Source: Hyaloraphidium curvatum SAG 235-1 (Eukaryota; Fungi; Monoblepharomycota). Taken from it: a stretch of DNA of 64,000 bases. The first letter of the stretch is position 1, and every line of letters begins with the position of its first letter. A model generated the notes under the pieces. The model saw nothing but the letters and a program-made list of their open reading frames with translations, ran no database searches and had not been told where the DNA came from. Below are positions 55,233 to 63,150 of this stretch, in pieces. The stretch covers positions 434,001 to 498,000 of the forward strand of contig JAIVFI010000022.1 in assembly GCA_025558095.1 (NCBI GenBank). The letters are read 5' to 3'. The position numbers and the translations under genes were made by a program.

Positions 55233-57193
55233 ATGGCGCGCGCACTTCTGTTCGCCGCGCTGGCCGCGCTCGCACTCCCCGTTTCCGGCGCGCCACGGTT
55301 CGACACGCGGCCGCCCGGCGCTCTGAGTCCGAACAGCGCCGGCAGTGCGCCGCAGGGGCCCCCGGCGTACGGCTTCCGGCCGCCCAAGGGCGCCCGGCCG
55401 CGCGGCCCGCTGTACTCGGCCGGCATCAGGCCGACGCCGGTCGATCCGGGAAGCACCGCGCCACCCGATGCCGGCGGCGGGGTGACGCCGAATGCACCGA
55501 GGGCGATGCGGTCGGTGGCCTACTTTCCGAGCTGGAGCTACGGTGGGTGATCGGCACCTGCCTCGTCGCCGACCACGCCCCCTGACCCGTTTTGGATTCG
55601 CCCAATTTAGCCGACGTGCCGCTCGTTCCCGATGTGGCCGGCCGCCTGTGAGTTGCCTAGCCGCAGCAGAGGCCTCCTGTTTCATTTCCGGGGCTGACTT
55701 GCTCCGTCCATCGCGCCTGTCACGTGAACTCGGCCACCACTCCCTGCCTCCCACTCTGGCCTTCCCATCTGCCAGCACCCACGTCATCTACGCGTTCGCA
55801 ACCACGAGCTTCCACAACGGCCAGTGGTACCTCGATTTCATGAACCCCGACCCCGAGACGCGGATCTGCCCCGTCGGCGGCGGATGCAGCGACGACTTTT
55901 GCATCACCTTCCCCGAGAACCAGTCATGCGACGGCGGCGCGACCGTCGCCATCACCCGTTTCGCCGGTCACCGCAACATCAGCGGCTGCCCGACGGCGAA
56001 CACGTGCTGGAACAAGATGGTGCCCTCACGGAACCCGCAGTGCACCGTCTCGGTGCCGAACCGCATCTGCGGGCAGCTGGGGTACCTCCTCAAGCGGGCC
56101 CGGAGCGAGCCGCAGAACCAGGGGGTCAGGTTCATGCTGGGGATCGGCGGCGGGATGGACAGCAACTACTTTGGCCATGCGACCATGGTCAACATGATCC
56201 CGTCGTTCGTCAGCAACATCGTCAACACGGTGATCAACTATGGGTTCGACGGCGTCGACATCGATTGGTAGGTGCAGGCCGAGGGCGGCAGCGCACACGA
56301 GCCGCGGCTGACCGTGCGTGCAGGGAGTACCCCACTTTTGAGCGCGGAGGGCAGCCGACCCCGAACGCCCCGTCCCGCGGGGAGTTCAACCAGGGCATCG
56401 ACTGCCTCTACCAGCCCTGCCAGCTGGGGGCGCGGGTCAACGACGGGCGCAAGTACGTCGATCTGATGCGGAGGCTGCGCGCGGCGTTCAACAGGCGCGG
56501 GCGCAACCGGTACGGCGAGCCCTACCTCGTGAGCACGGCGATCCCGGCCGTGCCGTACTACGTGGACCGGTTCAATGTGTCGGCAATCTGCGCGGTCAGC
56601 GACTTTATCAACGTCATGAGCTGTGGGTGTCTCGTCTTCTGCAACAGCAGCTCGCCTTTGCTGACGCTAGGCTGCACCCAGACGACTACTACGGCCCCTG
56701 GTCCTCCACGGCGGGGCCCAATGCCCCCCTCTTCAACACGCGCGACGCCGCCCTCTCCGTCTACGGCAGCTTCGACATGCTCGCCAACCGCGGCTGCCCC
56801 CGCTCCAAGATGAACCTCGGCATCCCCTTCTACGGCTACCGCTACTACGGCGTCTCCCCCGGCCCCACCGGCTTCGGCCTGTACATGCCCTACACGCGCG
56901 TGGGGTGGGACACTTCGGTCCGCTACTCGGACGTGCGCAACGCGGTGGCCTCGGAGCCGGGCTGGCGCGTGTTCTACGACAACAGGACGGCGACGACGTC
57001 GCAGAGCGCCGTGGCCTACAACCGCGCGAGGAGGGAGATGATCGCGTTCGAGGATCCGCAGACGATCGCGTGGAAGAGGGCGTGGGCGGCGAGGACGGGG
57101 GTGGGGGGGCTGATGTACTGGAGCCTGGGGCTGGACGACGAGGCGGGGTCGCTGCTGAGGGCCGCAGTGCCGACGATCAGAAGGCGGCCGTGA
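55233..57193 (+). CDS. Secreted GH18 chitinase with Cys-rich insertion
   Basis: Signal peptide, AYFPSWS and THVIYAFA. Catalytic FDGVDIDW|EYP is intact after splicing. Also NVMS/YD, KMNLGIPFYG and GGLMYWSL. Confidence 0.9.
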
Positions 57194-57289
57194 AGAGCAG
57201 TGGTCAAGAGGAGGAAGGGAGGCGAAGGGAGGAAGCATCAAGATACCGGGGACCAATATCCTACGTCACCCTTTGTCATCTCTCTATCG

Positions 57290-57342
57290 TGGAACAGTGG
57301 AATGGTGGAACAATGGAATGATGGTACAATGGACTGGTGGAA
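57290..57342. repeat. Degenerate 16-bp tandem repeat (TGGAACAATGGAATGG-like, about 3.3 copies)
   Basis: TGGAACAGTGGAATGG / TGGAACAATGGAATGA / TGGTACAATGGACTGG / TGGAA. Confidence 0.7.
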
Positions 57343-57684
57343 GAGAGATACATGCATGAGCTAAAACGGCGGTGGCCCGTTGGGCGTGGTCGACTTCATC
57401 GCCCGCTGGTACGTCTCCATCCCGTCCATCTCCACGAGCCACCGTGTGGCAAGTCGCGGGCGGAAAACGGGCAGGGATCGCGGCGAAACCACCGCCGATT
57501 CTTCCGATGCCTGCGGTATGCGGGGAGTCTTGGTGGCGCTTACGGCGTCGAAAAGAGCTCCGATACGCGGTCAACTCAATGAATACATAGAAACTGGAAA
57601 CCTAAGCAAGGAAGTGCTACTAGACAACTTGCAGCAAACAACTATTTGAACGGCGACGACTTTGCTGGTGACCGCGCGGATGCA

Positions 57685-60600
57685 TCAATAGCCCAAGATG
57701 CTACGCCCTTGAGAGCACCAGTGACCCGGTGCTCCGTATCCCGTGATGCCCCAGAACTGGCGGTGTCGCTCGCCACACTATCCGAAAGGAGTTAGCACTT
57801 GCTCGGGCCTACTTTGCGACGCAACGCACCTCGAAGTAGGGAGATGTACCGTCCCCGGTGTTGGCAATCTGAGCGCAGCAGTCCGCGTTCCGCCAAATGC
57901 AGTCTAATTGCCGTGTATACTGTTCAGCGAGGCGAAGATCGGACGGCTGCCGTCAGCTTACCCATGCTGTTCCTCGACATGCACGCAATTTCCCCTGACG
58001 CCGTCTTCTTCACCGGAGTCATGTTCGGTCCGCCTGAGAAACAATCAGCGCACGACAATGCCTCATCGCGCGAGTATCTCACCAGCAGGATCGGCCATGC
58101 AGTACCACAAGCTTCCACCATAATCGGGGCCTCCTGAGAAACACGTACGTAAGAGGGGTCCTTTCTCGCGTACAGTTGACCGCGTACCCGTTGGTGCATT
58201 GCACGCGGAGCTTGCCGAAGAGCCGGGCGACGAGGGTGGGGGAGGCGGAGGCGGAGGTGGAGGCGACGGCGGTGCGGATCGGACCGCGAAAGGGTTGGCT
58301 TGGCAATCGTACGACAAGGTCCTGACACTGGCACCATCACCGGTAGCTCTTCCCAAGTTGTGGCGACCCAGGTCAACCTAGTGAGAGACACGGCTTCAGC
58401 TCAGATTCAGAGGAAGCACGTTGAACCTACTGCGCCCCAGAAGGCTCGAACCCAGCCGTCAATGCGCACTTCCCACGGGTCGTGTCCCTCGCGGAGCTCT
58501 CGACAGATACCGGATACATCCGCCGCTCCACGAGCTTCGTAGTAAGTTCTGAAGCGTGCCGACAGGTCTATACCCCCCTCGGCGGCGCCCCAGAGCACGG
58601 ATCCGGCGGCAGCAACACCGAAAACAATGGTGCCGGCAGGGCGAGCCGTGACATCGGCACCAGCGCGAGCTTGGTCAAAGCAAACGGTGTTTCGCGCGTC
58701 GAGCTCGGCTCTCCCGTCCATGTAGATGGTTACGGCTGGCAAGTGACCGTCAACAAGCCGCGAAGATCCGAATGCATCGCACTCACCAATGTCCGCAATG
58801 CGAAGAATAGGCACGTTCACTCCGAGTTGCGCGATTCTCCGATCTCCAGTGTCGCCGAGCTCAGAGTCGACGGTGGTGCAGTCGGTCGACAATCCCTGGT
58901 TGATGTACGTGTAATCTCCTAGAACAAGCAAGGCTTGGGCGCTGTAGTATCCATCCCACTGCAGGCAAGTTGAGCAGCAAATTCCTAAGGGACATTTTCC
59001 ACAAGCCTACAGTGGAGAAGCCCAAACGTCCTTCAAAGAATGTGCTGCTTCGTCCGAACGCTCTGCCCTGGATTTTGGCGCCTCCAAAGGCTGATGAAGT
59101 CGAGTAATTAGTTTGACAGGCGACATCCTGCTTAGATTTGCGTACCTTTAAATCTCATCGTGCCGCCCTGCTCGCCAGCGCCTCCAAAGAGAGCCGCGAC
59201 GGCTCGGACATTAACCTGGTCGTTGCCCAAGTTGTAGGGGTAGACGTACCAGAAATGCTGAGCGAAACTCGCGTCAGGATCAGAAACAGATAACCTGACA
59301 TGTCCTTACGGCCGGGTAGCGCTGAAGGTCGCTGTACCTGTCGCTCGTGCTCTGCATGTCATCGAGGAGAGGAACCGAGTCGCTCCACGCCCGCTTCAAC
59401 AAATGGTGGAAGCCGCGCTTTGCCAAGTACTCCATTGCTTGGGGCTCAGCGAGCGTGGCAAGCTCCATGTCGAGCGCGTCAGGTCCCTCGGCATGCGGCT
59501 CACTGAGGGATCTGTGCGCCGCATCAATCACAGCAGCCCGTATCGTCTCATCGTGCCGAGCTCTGGCCAGTAGAGATGCGAGTTCCGCTCGTACATCCGG
59601 GCGATGCGCGTGTCGACGGAGAGAGAAAACAGCCGCTTCGGCCACTTGGCTATCGGATGGTGAAGCGGGAGTTTGCAGGAACGTTTTGAGAGAGTTGACT
59701 GGACAGTTCTTGCCAGCATTGCCGGCCGAGAGGATGGCTGTCGCGCATGCCGATACTGAAGCAGCTTCCCGAGCGGTGCCGTTCGAGCAGGCCTTCGACA
59801 CGAGGCGTAGAAGGATGGAGGACGCCGTCTCTTGGTCCGCGTGCTCGAGTACTTTGCCTAAAGCGAGGGATGCACGGCTGGAGAGCGCTGGCTCGATGGA
59901 AGAGCTCAAGGAGAACAGCTTGTCAACGACGGCGGGGTGCGAAGATGTGGCATGGAACACGCTGCCGATTGCAGCTTCTCGAATCGCCAGCTTTTGCGAC
60001 CCAAGACCATCGACAATGACCTGAAATGCGGCTTCGGTGTCGGCTGCGGCCAAAGTCTCGTAGACGCGCCTCGCAAACTCTCTAGACCGAGGCCCGGCGC
60101 TTTCAACAGCGGCATTTGCCGCGAATCCGGCGGCAAAGGCGTCCGCATTCGTTCCCGAGGAGAGCTCCAAGGAAAGCGAACGAAACAACTGCGAGTCCGC
60201 GGGGTCTTCCTCGAGTCTCCGGAGAAGGCCATGAATAGCCGAACCGCGGCGAACGAGGCGGCTCCGAGCGGGCGCAGTCCGTTGCTCACCAGCACCGGCA
60301 GCGGGCTTCGCCGTGTGCTTCAGGCTCTCGGTCGAAACCTGTCCGTTCCCTGCACGGCTCGCGAGGGCTGTGGATGCTATGCGCGGAAGAGCCGAGGCCA
60401 GCGAGAGACGCGTGAACGCGACCATGGGCAAGCCTTGCAACTGAGTCGCATTTTCGGGCGCTCGTGGATACCCGATGACCATCTCGGAGACTTCTTGAAC
60501 CTCCATGACCGTGCCGTCCAGACGTATCCACGCAATCGAGGTTTCGTTGAACGTTGCCGACGAATTGCTTTCGAACAGCGCGGTGTCGTCGTAGAAGGCC

Positions 60601-61671
60601 TGCACCGCAATACCGGGAGCCTGCTCATTGGTGACGGCGATGTAGGTGGAGTTCCGTGCCCCGTTGGCACCGACCTCGGCTGCAAGACCTCAAGTAAGCC
60701 CAACAGACAAGGAGCCGAAAGCAAAAGAGCCCACTGATGACCGCAGAGGAGCTATGGAAGACAAGATTGACTTGGAACGACTGGAAAAGCTCGATAAGTG
60801 CGTGATTCGAAGCGACCGATACGATTCCCACCTCAGCGATGCCCTTCTTGATATTAGCAACCTGAGAATCCTCGCCAGGGTGGACCTGCACGCCGACCAC
60901 GGTGCCATTGTTGGCGCGCAGGAATCGAAAAGGCTTGGAAAAGTTCGCCGAGACTTGATCGGAATAGTCCGGAGCGTTGCCGCGCAACGCGTCCAGCAGG
61001 GCGGATCCTGTTTCTGCCAGCCAGCTGGATCGTGCGCCGGCCTCGGAGATTCGAACGTTGGAAACCTGCAAGCTGCTATCAGAGTCCGAGTGGAAGGAAC
61101 TGATCAATCGGCCACCGACCGCAAGATCAAACATGTGGGACCGATCTGTGCCGTTCTCGCCGGCCGAAACCTCTCCAAGACAAGTCAGATAGGCGTGGGC
61201 TATGATCGTAAAGCCGGCACAAGCTTTCGGCCCCTGCGTAGCGGCCAGTTTCCCGATGCCGAAGCAAGTTGTGTAGTTGAACCTGTAGAGCAGCGTGGTG
61301 TTCGTCTTCACCAATCGTCAAGTCAATGGTGGAACTCGCACTCTGAGAAGCCAACACACCTGACATCCGGGAACGATGTGGCCATAGAATGACTCAAGAC
61401 CGTCGGGGAGTTCCGGCTTGGCTCCTGCAGCCGCAGCGGCGCCTGCGCCCTCCGGAACGAGACGCAGAGCGTCCCATTCGGGCGATGAGATCCCAGTCGA
61501 GCGGGATTTGAGGAGCAGCGCGACTGTGATGGCGCTGAGGGTCGCCAAGAGCAGCGCAACGGCGCCGGCGATGAGCAAGAGGCGGCAGCGCCTGGCGCCC
61601 TTCGAAATCTTGACCGAGCCACCGTCGGCGATGAGATTGGCGTCGCCGCTTTTCTCCATGCCGTCGGCCAT
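57685..61671 (-). CDS. Membrane-anchored large lipid transfer protein-like (vitellogenin/MTP LPD-N domain) with poly-Pro linker and C-terminal Cys-rich domain
   Basis: N-terminal TM. Splicing gives SKPFRF...NGTV...EDSQVANIKKGIAE/SFQVNL...TEVGANGARNSTY. The helical region has LALG and ILSAGNAG. The last exons end ...GHWCSQGRSILGY* (TGA at 57685-57687). About 12 introns. Confidence 0.7.
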
Positions 61672-61935
61672 GGCAGAGCCGGCCTGAGTTGTTCGATGAA
61701 GCTGTGCACGTCGACTGTGATGAACGGGTTGAGATTCCAGGGTTCCCCCTCAGTTCGACACCAGCCACAAGCGGAGCGGAAATCCCGCATCGCAAAGCCA
61801 AATCTCAAGCGGACTGGCGGAGAAGGAATGGGGCGAGAGATCACGTCCAATAGATAATGGCGCTACAATATCGGCCTGCCGTGCCAGTAATCAGTTGAAC
61901 AATATCGTCTGAGGCTCACCGAGCATCTTCTTCAT

Positions 61936-63150
61936 TCATCCTTCGTTCCCGCTCCCAGACGACCTGCTGCCAGGGTCCGACGGCGGCCGCGACCTCTCCA
62001 GCCTGTTCTTAACGATGGCAGGAGGTTCGTCCTCGCCAAGCCGGAGCGAAAAGGCGTTCTGCTGCTTCTGGAGAAGCAGCTCCTGGCCAATCGCCATCAG
62101 AGTCTCTTGCATCGACTGGATCCGGATGGGTTTCGTCAGCGTCCCGCGCATGCCGCTGTCGATCGAGCGCGTCTGCGAGATCTGCAGCAAATGGACGCGC
62201 CAGACGACAAGTAGGAGACTCAGTGCCCAATCCGACCTCAGAGATGTCGGCAGTGACGGCGATGATTACGGGGTGAGGCCGTCAATGACGGGCATGTTGA
62301 CTGTGCGAATTTCGTAAGATGAAGGCCCAAAAAGCAACGGTGAGAGCAACCCACCATCCATCAAGATTAGCTCGAACGGCAGGCCCGCACGGATGGCCTC
62401 CTCCACTGTCCACCATCTCGATCGCCACTTTGCCGTCGTTCGCGCATTGGACGCCCTCGAAACCCATCTTCTCCAGGAACCGCGTCGCCAGAAGAAGGTT
62501 GACCGAGTTGTCGTACACCGCGGGGATCCGCATCGGCAGCCGCTTGCCCAGGGTGTGGTCGATTTCGCTCGCGGGGTCTTCTGTCTCCCTGCGGCGTTTG
62601 GGCGCGCCACCGGCCGCGCCGTCGGGAGCTGCCTCCGACGCGGATCCGTTCGGAAGTGGGGCCGAAGCAGGGGCCCCGGTGGCCACGGCGTTGGCGAGCT
62701 TGGCCGAATCCAGAGCCTGCACCACGACCTCGGCCATGGAGCTCGAGCGGTAGGGGATGTAGATGTGCGCGTCACGTTGTTGGGGTAGAACGTCCTGCCG
62801 GCGCGGTCGGGTTACTCCTCCAACACGGCCGAACGGAAGCCAACGAACCATTGGTCAAACACGCTCTCCCCGTGGTTGAAGAGCTTGTCGTCGATGCACC
62901 ACAGCCGCAGCTTGGTCGCCTCGCTCAAGTCGCTCGTGTAGTCCGTCGCCAGGAAGTGCTCCAGGTCGTTCTTCCGCCACAGTGCGACCGCTGCGGAGTT
63001 TCCTCAGAACATGGCATGATTATCCAGGTCGTAGATCCACACCGGCGAGGTGAAGTTGCCCAGGAGCGTCGCGTGCTCGGGCGTCCAGTGCGGCCTGGCC
63101 ATGAATGCCCGGAAAACCGGCCGCGGCACCCAAGCGAGGCCCGCAAGCAC
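61936..63150 (-). pseudogene. Degenerate C-terminal receiver (REC) domain of a hybrid histidine kinase
   Basis: LPMRIPAVYDNSVNLLLATRFLEKMG...NDGKVAIEM, then after a frameshift EEAIRAGLPFELILMD/VNMPVIDGL, then after another frameshift or deletion PVIIAVTAD/...SGMRGTLTKPI. An apparent stop lies upstream. The 5' limit is uncertain. Confidence 0.7.

Follow-up and report, generated by a model that had tools for sequence, protein, structure and literature searches.

An expressed large lipid transfer protein with a predicted membrane anchor in the unicellular fungus Hyaloraphidium curvatum

The window analysed here comprises 64,000 nucleotides from the genome of Hyaloraphidium curvatum SAG 235-1 (GenBank assembly GCA_025558095.1, contig JAIVFI010000022.1, positions 434,001 to 498,000 of the forward strand), a unicellular organism of the Monoblepharomycota, which are chytrid-grade fungi. 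On the minus strand of the window, between positions 57685 and 61671, lies a single expressed gene whose product carries the N-terminal beta-sheet and the helical subdomain of the large lipid transfer proteins (LLTPs). New here is an LLTP outside animals that is membrane-anchored by prediction, lacks the disulfide conserved in the family and carries a new Cys-rich module at its C-terminus. The LLTPs (MTP, apoB, vitellogenin, apolipophorin) have been treated as animal proteins tied to multicellular lipid transport (PMC12214520; PMC1783640), and a literature search on fungal, chytrid or bacterial LLTPs found nothing relevant.

By joining the chain of minus-strand open frames at GT-AG sites by hand we obtained an uninterrupted frame with 11 introns. 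All 11 are spliced out in a 3671-nt RNA contig (public run X1) which spans the gene in minus orientation (57655 to past 61750) with 0 mismatches and which in addition removes two further in-frame introns (61119–61066 and 58786–58736). The corrected gene runs from the start ATG at 61671 to the stop codon at 57687–57685 and has 14 exons, 13 GT-AG introns of 49–58 nt and a coding sequence of 3297 nt for 1098 amino acids (Table 1). The limits 57685 and 61671 drawn in the first-pass annotation are exactly those of this coding sequence. The RNA support is an assembled contig from the only public run with the stretch; expression level and transcript ends are not readable from contigs. As one single contig is spliced across all 13 introns, the beta, the helical and the C-terminal parts are carried by one mRNA, and the possibility that these parts are separate genes is thereby rejected. 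The gene is expressed and occurs in a single copy in the 31.9-Mb assembly. Contamination was also considered and rejected: the 706-kb contig holds NCBI's own gene model, the introns of 49–58 nt are of the host type and the mRNA matches without a mismatch.

When 1.84 billion representative proteins were searched exhaustively by HMMER with exon 5, only four were retrieved. One of them, P0001, is 100% identical and corresponds to KAI9016827.1 ("hypothetical protein DFJ74DRAFT_247424", Hyaloraphidium curvatum, 725 aa), whose database entry carries a precomputed PF01347 tag. This deposited protein matches exons 1–5, then runs into intron 5 (59309–59258) and terminates; because the model reads through the intron, it is devoid of the last 382 residues (exons 6–14). 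The other three proteins (P0002, P0003 and P0004; 28–32% identity) are the only relatives found. For the family and structure searches described below the exons were used individually, and exons 1–5 were represented by P0001.

The Pfam profile Vitellogenin_N (PF01347) scores 61.9 bits on P0001 (E 6.1e-17; curated cut-off 24 bits), which is not a chance match. When the protein is divided, the beta half (residues 100–400) alone reaches 30.8 bits (E 1.5e-7) on profile positions 73–149 and the helical half (residues 400–716) alone 34.7 bits (E 1e-8) on positions 362–551. The two half-matches are thus collinear and each is above the cut-off by itself. The relative P0004 is matched by the same profile with 44.1 bits. 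The short motifs from which the first-pass annotation had started are all present: the beta-region peptide with SFQVNL is encoded across two splice joints which are the same in P0001, and SLALG and ILSAGNAG are found at 59735–59712. AlphaFold2, run on P0001 with a shallow family alignment, predicts a solenoid of 17 helices (residues 400–713) with a predicted local distance difference test score (pLDDT) of ~90, the beta part being weak. A Foldseek search with this 725-residue model against 350,542 chains gave as the top four matches MTP (6i7s, 8eoj; E 4.7e-8) and lipovitellin (1lsh) over 650–700 aligned columns, the two proteins with which a comparison had been proposed. In the feature search of the ESM Atlas the nearest neighbours are vitellogenin and MTP clusters (0.93), and the top three are animal LLTPs.

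The helical part alone does not distinguish an LLTP from a generic HEAT/ARM-repeat protein that matches PF01347 by chance. With residues 400–725 VIA-align retrieves importins and designed ARM/HEAT proteins at Z ~15, and the helical fold by itself is indistinguishable from other solenoids. The HEAT_2 profile (PF13646) scores 24.3–26.8 bits and, at 26.5 bits, comes barely below its cut-off of 27.7 bits. In addition, PF01347 is also triggered by bacterial HEAT proteins. It is because of this ambiguity that a separate test of the beta half matters. This half was folded separately with a cleaner alignment (A3), because the VIA-align search with the 725-residue model was swamped by generic alpha-solenoids. 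The resulting model has strands surrounding a long helix (model residues 134–151); in LLTPs the N-terminal N-sheet is an antiparallel beta-sheet or barrel enclosing a central helix (PMC12214520). In the Foldseek search with the beta half ranks 1–6 are all LLTPs with a probability of 1.00, namely MTP (E 1.3e-8), lipovitellin (3.3e-6), the beta-barrel of apoB-100 (7.4e-4) and honeybee vitellogenin, and only after them come MHC chains with a probability of ~0.1. VIA-align, which works independently of Foldseek and was run exhaustively on 48,161 chains, places honeybee vitellogenin (Z 11.2), apoB-100 (8.7), lipovitellin (8.4) and MTP (7.5) before the next chain at 5.9, and all four alignments lie on the N-sheets of the targets (from residues ~17–43 to ~262–309). 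The beta half, which is without helical repeat, hence passes PF01347 alone, and in two structure searches its best matches are LLTP N-sheets only. On these grounds we reject the generic HEAT protein, which appears very improbable, and the resemblance to the LPD-N domain claimed in the first-pass annotation is borne out in both halves and in the right order.

Several observations weigh against an MTP-like LLTP. Confidence in the model of the beta domain is low (mean pLDDT 52.5), and sequence searches of the PDB chains with P0001 and with the family profile found no LLTP, only weak HEAT matches to eEF3. A loop disulfide of the N-sheet is conserved in lamprey, honeybee and human LLTPs (C178–C222 in the bee; PMC12214520). 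Such a bond is impossible in the H. curvatum protein, as not a single Cys occurs between residues 148 and 556 of P0001. Instead, all four family members have three Cys of exon 2 in common, and one further Cys lies just before them in exon 1. The remaining points concern exons 6–9, the Gly-rich region of the first-pass annotation, which indeed contains 11–23% Gly. These exons encode ~221 residues, are conserved in all relatives (32–34% identity to the relatives' contigs L001–L003) and occupy the position where the C and A sheets of an LLTP would sit. Nevertheless, the exon-by-exon Pfam comparison of exons 6–9 and of the relatives' equivalents gave no match, including PF09172 and PF19444, and the ESM Atlas feature search with the relatives' equivalent of exons 8–9 gave no lead, at low recognition. 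As neither profile matches and the Atlas is uninformative, a lipid cavity formed with this region stays a proposal. A complex prediction between the helical domain and the C-terminal beta region of a relative scored 0.02, the fold of the partner being uncertain, and counts neither for nor against such a cavity. By position and size exons 6–9 would fit a small C/A-sheet unit such as that of MTP. Taking all this together, we hold it as established, with little room for doubt, that the protein has an N-sheet of the LLTP type followed by the helical subdomain.

The N-terminus points to a membrane protein. Hydropathy after Kyte and Doolittle is highest in the 19-residue window beginning at residue 32 (mean 2.45), the hydrophobic helix is ~24 residues long, and AlphaFold2 places a helix at residues 24–58, over the predicted anchor. 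Six basic residues occur within residues 1–31, with five in the ten residues adjoining the hydrophobic stretch, and a low-complexity tether of ~50 residues follows. The proposed type II transmembrane anchor (residues 32–55) is thus supported, and it is conserved in three of three relatives, whose equivalent anchors have Kyte-Doolittle values of 2.6–2.9 at the same place and are followed by a common GI(A/S)...W/F-D motif. Downstream of the anchor there are 11 NxS/T sequons, and the NxT sequons of exon 2 are conserved. The feature for entry into the secretory pathway is therefore predicted to be present as a variant, with a signal anchor of the uncleaved type in place of a signal peptide. Because basic residues lie before the anchor and the 11 sequons behind it, and because secreted proteins also contain the tail module (see below), the LLTP part most likely faces the exoplasmic side, that is, the secretory lumen or the cell surface, and is held at the membrane.

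Behind the Gly-rich region a Pro-rich linker of 16 residues (58272–58225) precedes a Cys-rich tail encoded from the last part of exon 10 through exon 14, an arrangement that had also been read correctly in the first pass. The tail (58203–57688, minus strand) is one copy of a module of ~92 residues with eight Cys. Exons 13 and 14 each recur at 19 or more further loci of the H. curvatum genome, frequently side by side, and the four small tail exons align collinearly, at 52–63% identity, with the module as it occurs in signal-peptide proteins. The paralogue modules are mostly encoded on one exon and often stand behind a poly-Pro run; signal peptides are present in at least two of the proteins that contain them, and one paralogue is a fusion with a hydrolase domain of the beta-lactamase family. 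Copies of the module are also found at L020:1438–1713, L024:2551–2820, L026:2408–2683, L027:2051–2323, L010:1276–1584 and L009:1240–1575. The module belongs to no Pfam family and has no match in the PDB sequence search. Judged from these alignments, the tail is a lineage-expanded extracellular module which was added to an LLTP. The Cys-rich module defined by it is as yet unnamed and recurs widely across this genome.

Of the known systems the large subunit of MTP is the closest, as it is the best Foldseek match of both models. MTP is the smallest LLTP; it faces the secretory lumen and is soluble, with a cleaved signal peptide, as a heterodimer with PDI. Without anchor and tail the core of the H. 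curvatum protein has ~840 residues compared with 862–863 residues in the MTP chains of 6i7s, and the order of beta-barrel, helical domain and short C-terminal beta region is the same, the last part being assigned here by position. However, the identity to MTP is only 12–15%, PF19444 (MTP_lip_bd) is unmatched when tested exon by exon, and the conserved N-sheet disulfide is absent. Known LLTPs are soluble proteins with cleaved signal peptides, whereas the H. curvatum protein has an anchor of the uncleaved type and, unlike MTP, a Cys-rich tail. With the vitellogenins and lipovitellin (9enr, 9ens, 1lsh) the N-sheet is shared, the bee chain being aligned over 177 residues (chain residues 19–309) and the lamprey chain over residues 17–270. 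Vitellogenins are secreted, have 1300–1900 amino acids and comprise large A and C sheets together with the domains vWD and CTCK (PMC12214520); no such sheets or domains were detected here. The apoB-100 beta-alpha-1 region (9bd1, 9bd8) matches with its N-terminal beta-barrel over 176 residues; apoB is a secreted lipoprotein-particle scaffold of 4500 amino acids, and its amphipathic beta and alpha regions have no equivalent in our protein.

The activity of such a protein may be approached by analogy with MTP. We suggest that it is probably a membrane-held exoplasmic LLTP which binds and shuttles lipid in an MTP-like way. The LLTP part would face the lumen or the cell surface, tethered through the flexible segment of ~50 residues, and lipid would be bound in a cavity made up by the helical domain together with the beta region behind it. 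The lipid could then be shuttled between the protein's own membrane and a second site, and the Pro linker together with the Cys module might attach the distal end to a partner outside the cell or to the wall. On the other hand, the LLTP fold could have been put to another use, namely as a surface adhesion, pattern-recognition or wall-organising scaffold which is no lipid carrier. In animals LLTPs were recruited several times for immunity, clotting and glucan binding (PMC12214520; PMC1783640), and a scaffold would be in line with the C-terminal region, which has no detectable similarity to the lipid-binding sheets of LLTPs, with the missing disulfide and with a tail module that is common to many H. 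curvatum proteins, some with signal peptides. However, core size and domain order match those of MTP, all relatives conserve the stretch that follows the helical domain, as expected for a functional unit with that domain, and lipid binding is regarded as the ancestral function of the LLTPs (PMC1783640). We consider the scaffold unlikely and prefer the lipid shuttle.

The features of the gene are collected in Table 1. Its downstream neighbour lies on the opposite strand (~55800–57200, plus strand) and is chitinase-like (GH18; open reading frame 56627–57193 with a MYWSLGLDD-type motif).

Table 1. Features of the LLTP gene of H. curvatum in window coordinates (RNA, spliced RNA contig)
Feature	Position	Strand	Basis and remarks
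Whole coding sequence	57685..61671	-	Hand model corrected by spliced RNA contig; 14 exons, 1098 aa plus stop
Exon 1, 104 aa: cytosolic N-tail, transmembrane anchor, Ala/Gly/Pro-rich tether (topology predicted)	61360..61671	-	RNA; P0001 residues 1–104
Predicted type II signal-anchor/transmembrane helix, residues 32–55	61507..61578	-	Kyte-Doolittle; AlphaFold2 helix 24–58
Exon 2, 62 aa: first N-sheet strands, three conserved Cys, conserved NxT sequons	61120..61305	-	RNA joint; 43–51% identity to L001/L002/L003
Exon 3, 78 aa: N-sheet, ending in NIKKGIAE motif	60832..61065	-	RNA; Pfam profile positions 73–149
Exon 4, 46-nt mini-exon SFQVNL...	60735..60780	-	Both joints in RNA contig; same sequence in P0001
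Exon 5, 1370 nt: remaining N-sheet and entire helical domain	59310..60679	-	RNA; exon search
LLTP N-sheet (beta-barrel), P0001 residues ~105–400	60260..61305, introns included	-	PF01347; Foldseek; VIA-align
LLTP alpha-helical subdomain, P0001 residues 400–716, 17 helices, LALG and AGNAG motifs	59310..60259	-	PF01347; AlphaFold2 pLDDT ~90
Exon 6, 37 aa: Gly-rich C-terminal region begins	59146..59257	-	RNA; 42% identity to L001
Exon 7, 26 aa	59011..59090	-	RNA contig
Exon 8, 57 aa	58787..58958	-	RNA; conserved in L001–L003
Exon 9, 101 aa	58431..58735	-	RNA; 32–34% identity to L001–L003
Exon 10, 63 aa: Pro-rich linker 58272–58225, first tail-module Cys 58203–58201	58188..58377	-	RNA; 24% Pro
Exon 11, tail module part 1	58083..58133	-	RNA; module alignment
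Exon 12, tail module part 2	57962..58033	-	RNA; module alignment
Exon 13, tail module part 3 (CIW...CC)	57830..57903	-	RNA; genome matches; module alignment
Exon 14, tail module part 4 and stop codon	57685..57777	-	RNA; genome matches; module alignment

The three relatives are environmental and come from two Logan assemblies and one JGI/ENA metagenome (records SRR23967301, SRR26194948 and ERZ28593542). Their contigs have a GC content of 52–55% compared with 64.6% for the window, and for this reason they belong to other organisms. They hold collinear equivalents of exons 1, 2, 3, 5, 6, 8 and 9 and stop before the tail. Two introns, after ...GIAE (60831–60781) and after ...RYP(A/Q) (59309–59258), are common to H. 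curvatum, L002 (2406–2490) and L003 (3537–3585), whereas L001 is without both. Next to the relative's gene on the metagenomic contig L003 a dual-specificity phosphatase is encoded (PF00782, E 3e-29), as is a protein with ankyrin repeats (3–929 and 1362–2381). Two scans of metagenomes found no further relative, and a scan of 185,579 bacterial and archaeal species genomes found none. A word-filtered homologue search (queries P0001, A1 and A2) returned only the query or P0003, a filter that missed known relatives as well.

The origin of the gene has to be seen in connection with bacterial proteins that combine HEAT_2 and Vitellogenin_N. The ESM Atlas contains clusters of such proteins, mostly from Myxococcota and 536–654 amino acids long, whose predicted beta domain aligns to the N-sheet model over ~187 residues with a template modelling score of 0.46–0.47, equal to that of arthropod and chordate clusters, and is followed by helical repeats. 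These prokaryotic proteins are uncharacterised, are shorter than ours by roughly the anchor, the C-terminal region and the tail, and a literature search on them found nothing. The statement that the family is known mainly from animals needs to be qualified in view of the bacterial clusters, which align equally well; an LPD_N-like architecture of beta plus helical domain seems to exist in bacteria. Recent transfer from an animal can be rejected, as the identity to solved animal LLTPs is only 12–17%.

Given these clusters, a bacterial beta-barrel plus HEAT protein might have been acquired by horizontal transfer and might later have gained introns, anchor and the eukaryotic tail, an origin that would be compatible with either function. 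The base composition has to be considered as well. The block 57200–62400 has a GC content of 0.56–0.63, below that of its flanks (0.64–0.75); the coding sequence has 0.61, with 0.67 at third codon positions, and the introns 0.52. In exon 5 the value at third codon positions is 0.66 compared with 0.78–0.92 in typical coding frames of the window, which is a point in favour of a bacterial source. However, 13 spliceosomal introns interrupt the gene, and two of these lie at positions common to distant relatives, which shows a long residence in eukaryotes. In addition, no bacterial protein was found at E 0.001 among the 1.84 billion representatives, none in the 185,579 species genomes, and the top three feature neighbours in the Atlas are animal LLTPs. 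A bacterial origin is accordingly improbable in our opinion, though by no means negligible. We tentatively put forward, as a speculation in some doubt, that the lipid-binding unit of the LLTPs is older than the animals. The Hyaloraphidium family would then have been inherited vertically from an ancestor of opisthokont (or greater) age and would still show the early state of the unit, a membrane-tethered exoplasmic lipid shuttle.

For practical purposes it should be noted that the NCBI gene model KAI9016827.1 is truncated. For the biology of the family, an expressed LLTP in a unicellular, early-diverging fungus raises the question which role such a protein has without lipoproteins, yolk or circulation. 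It also raises the questions whether membrane tethering is the ancestral or a derived state and, given the bacterial look-alikes, from which source the family arose. If the tentative vertical descent is true, animals would have derived their soluble MTP and their secreted lipoproteins at a later time from a membrane-tethered shuttle of a unicellular organism.

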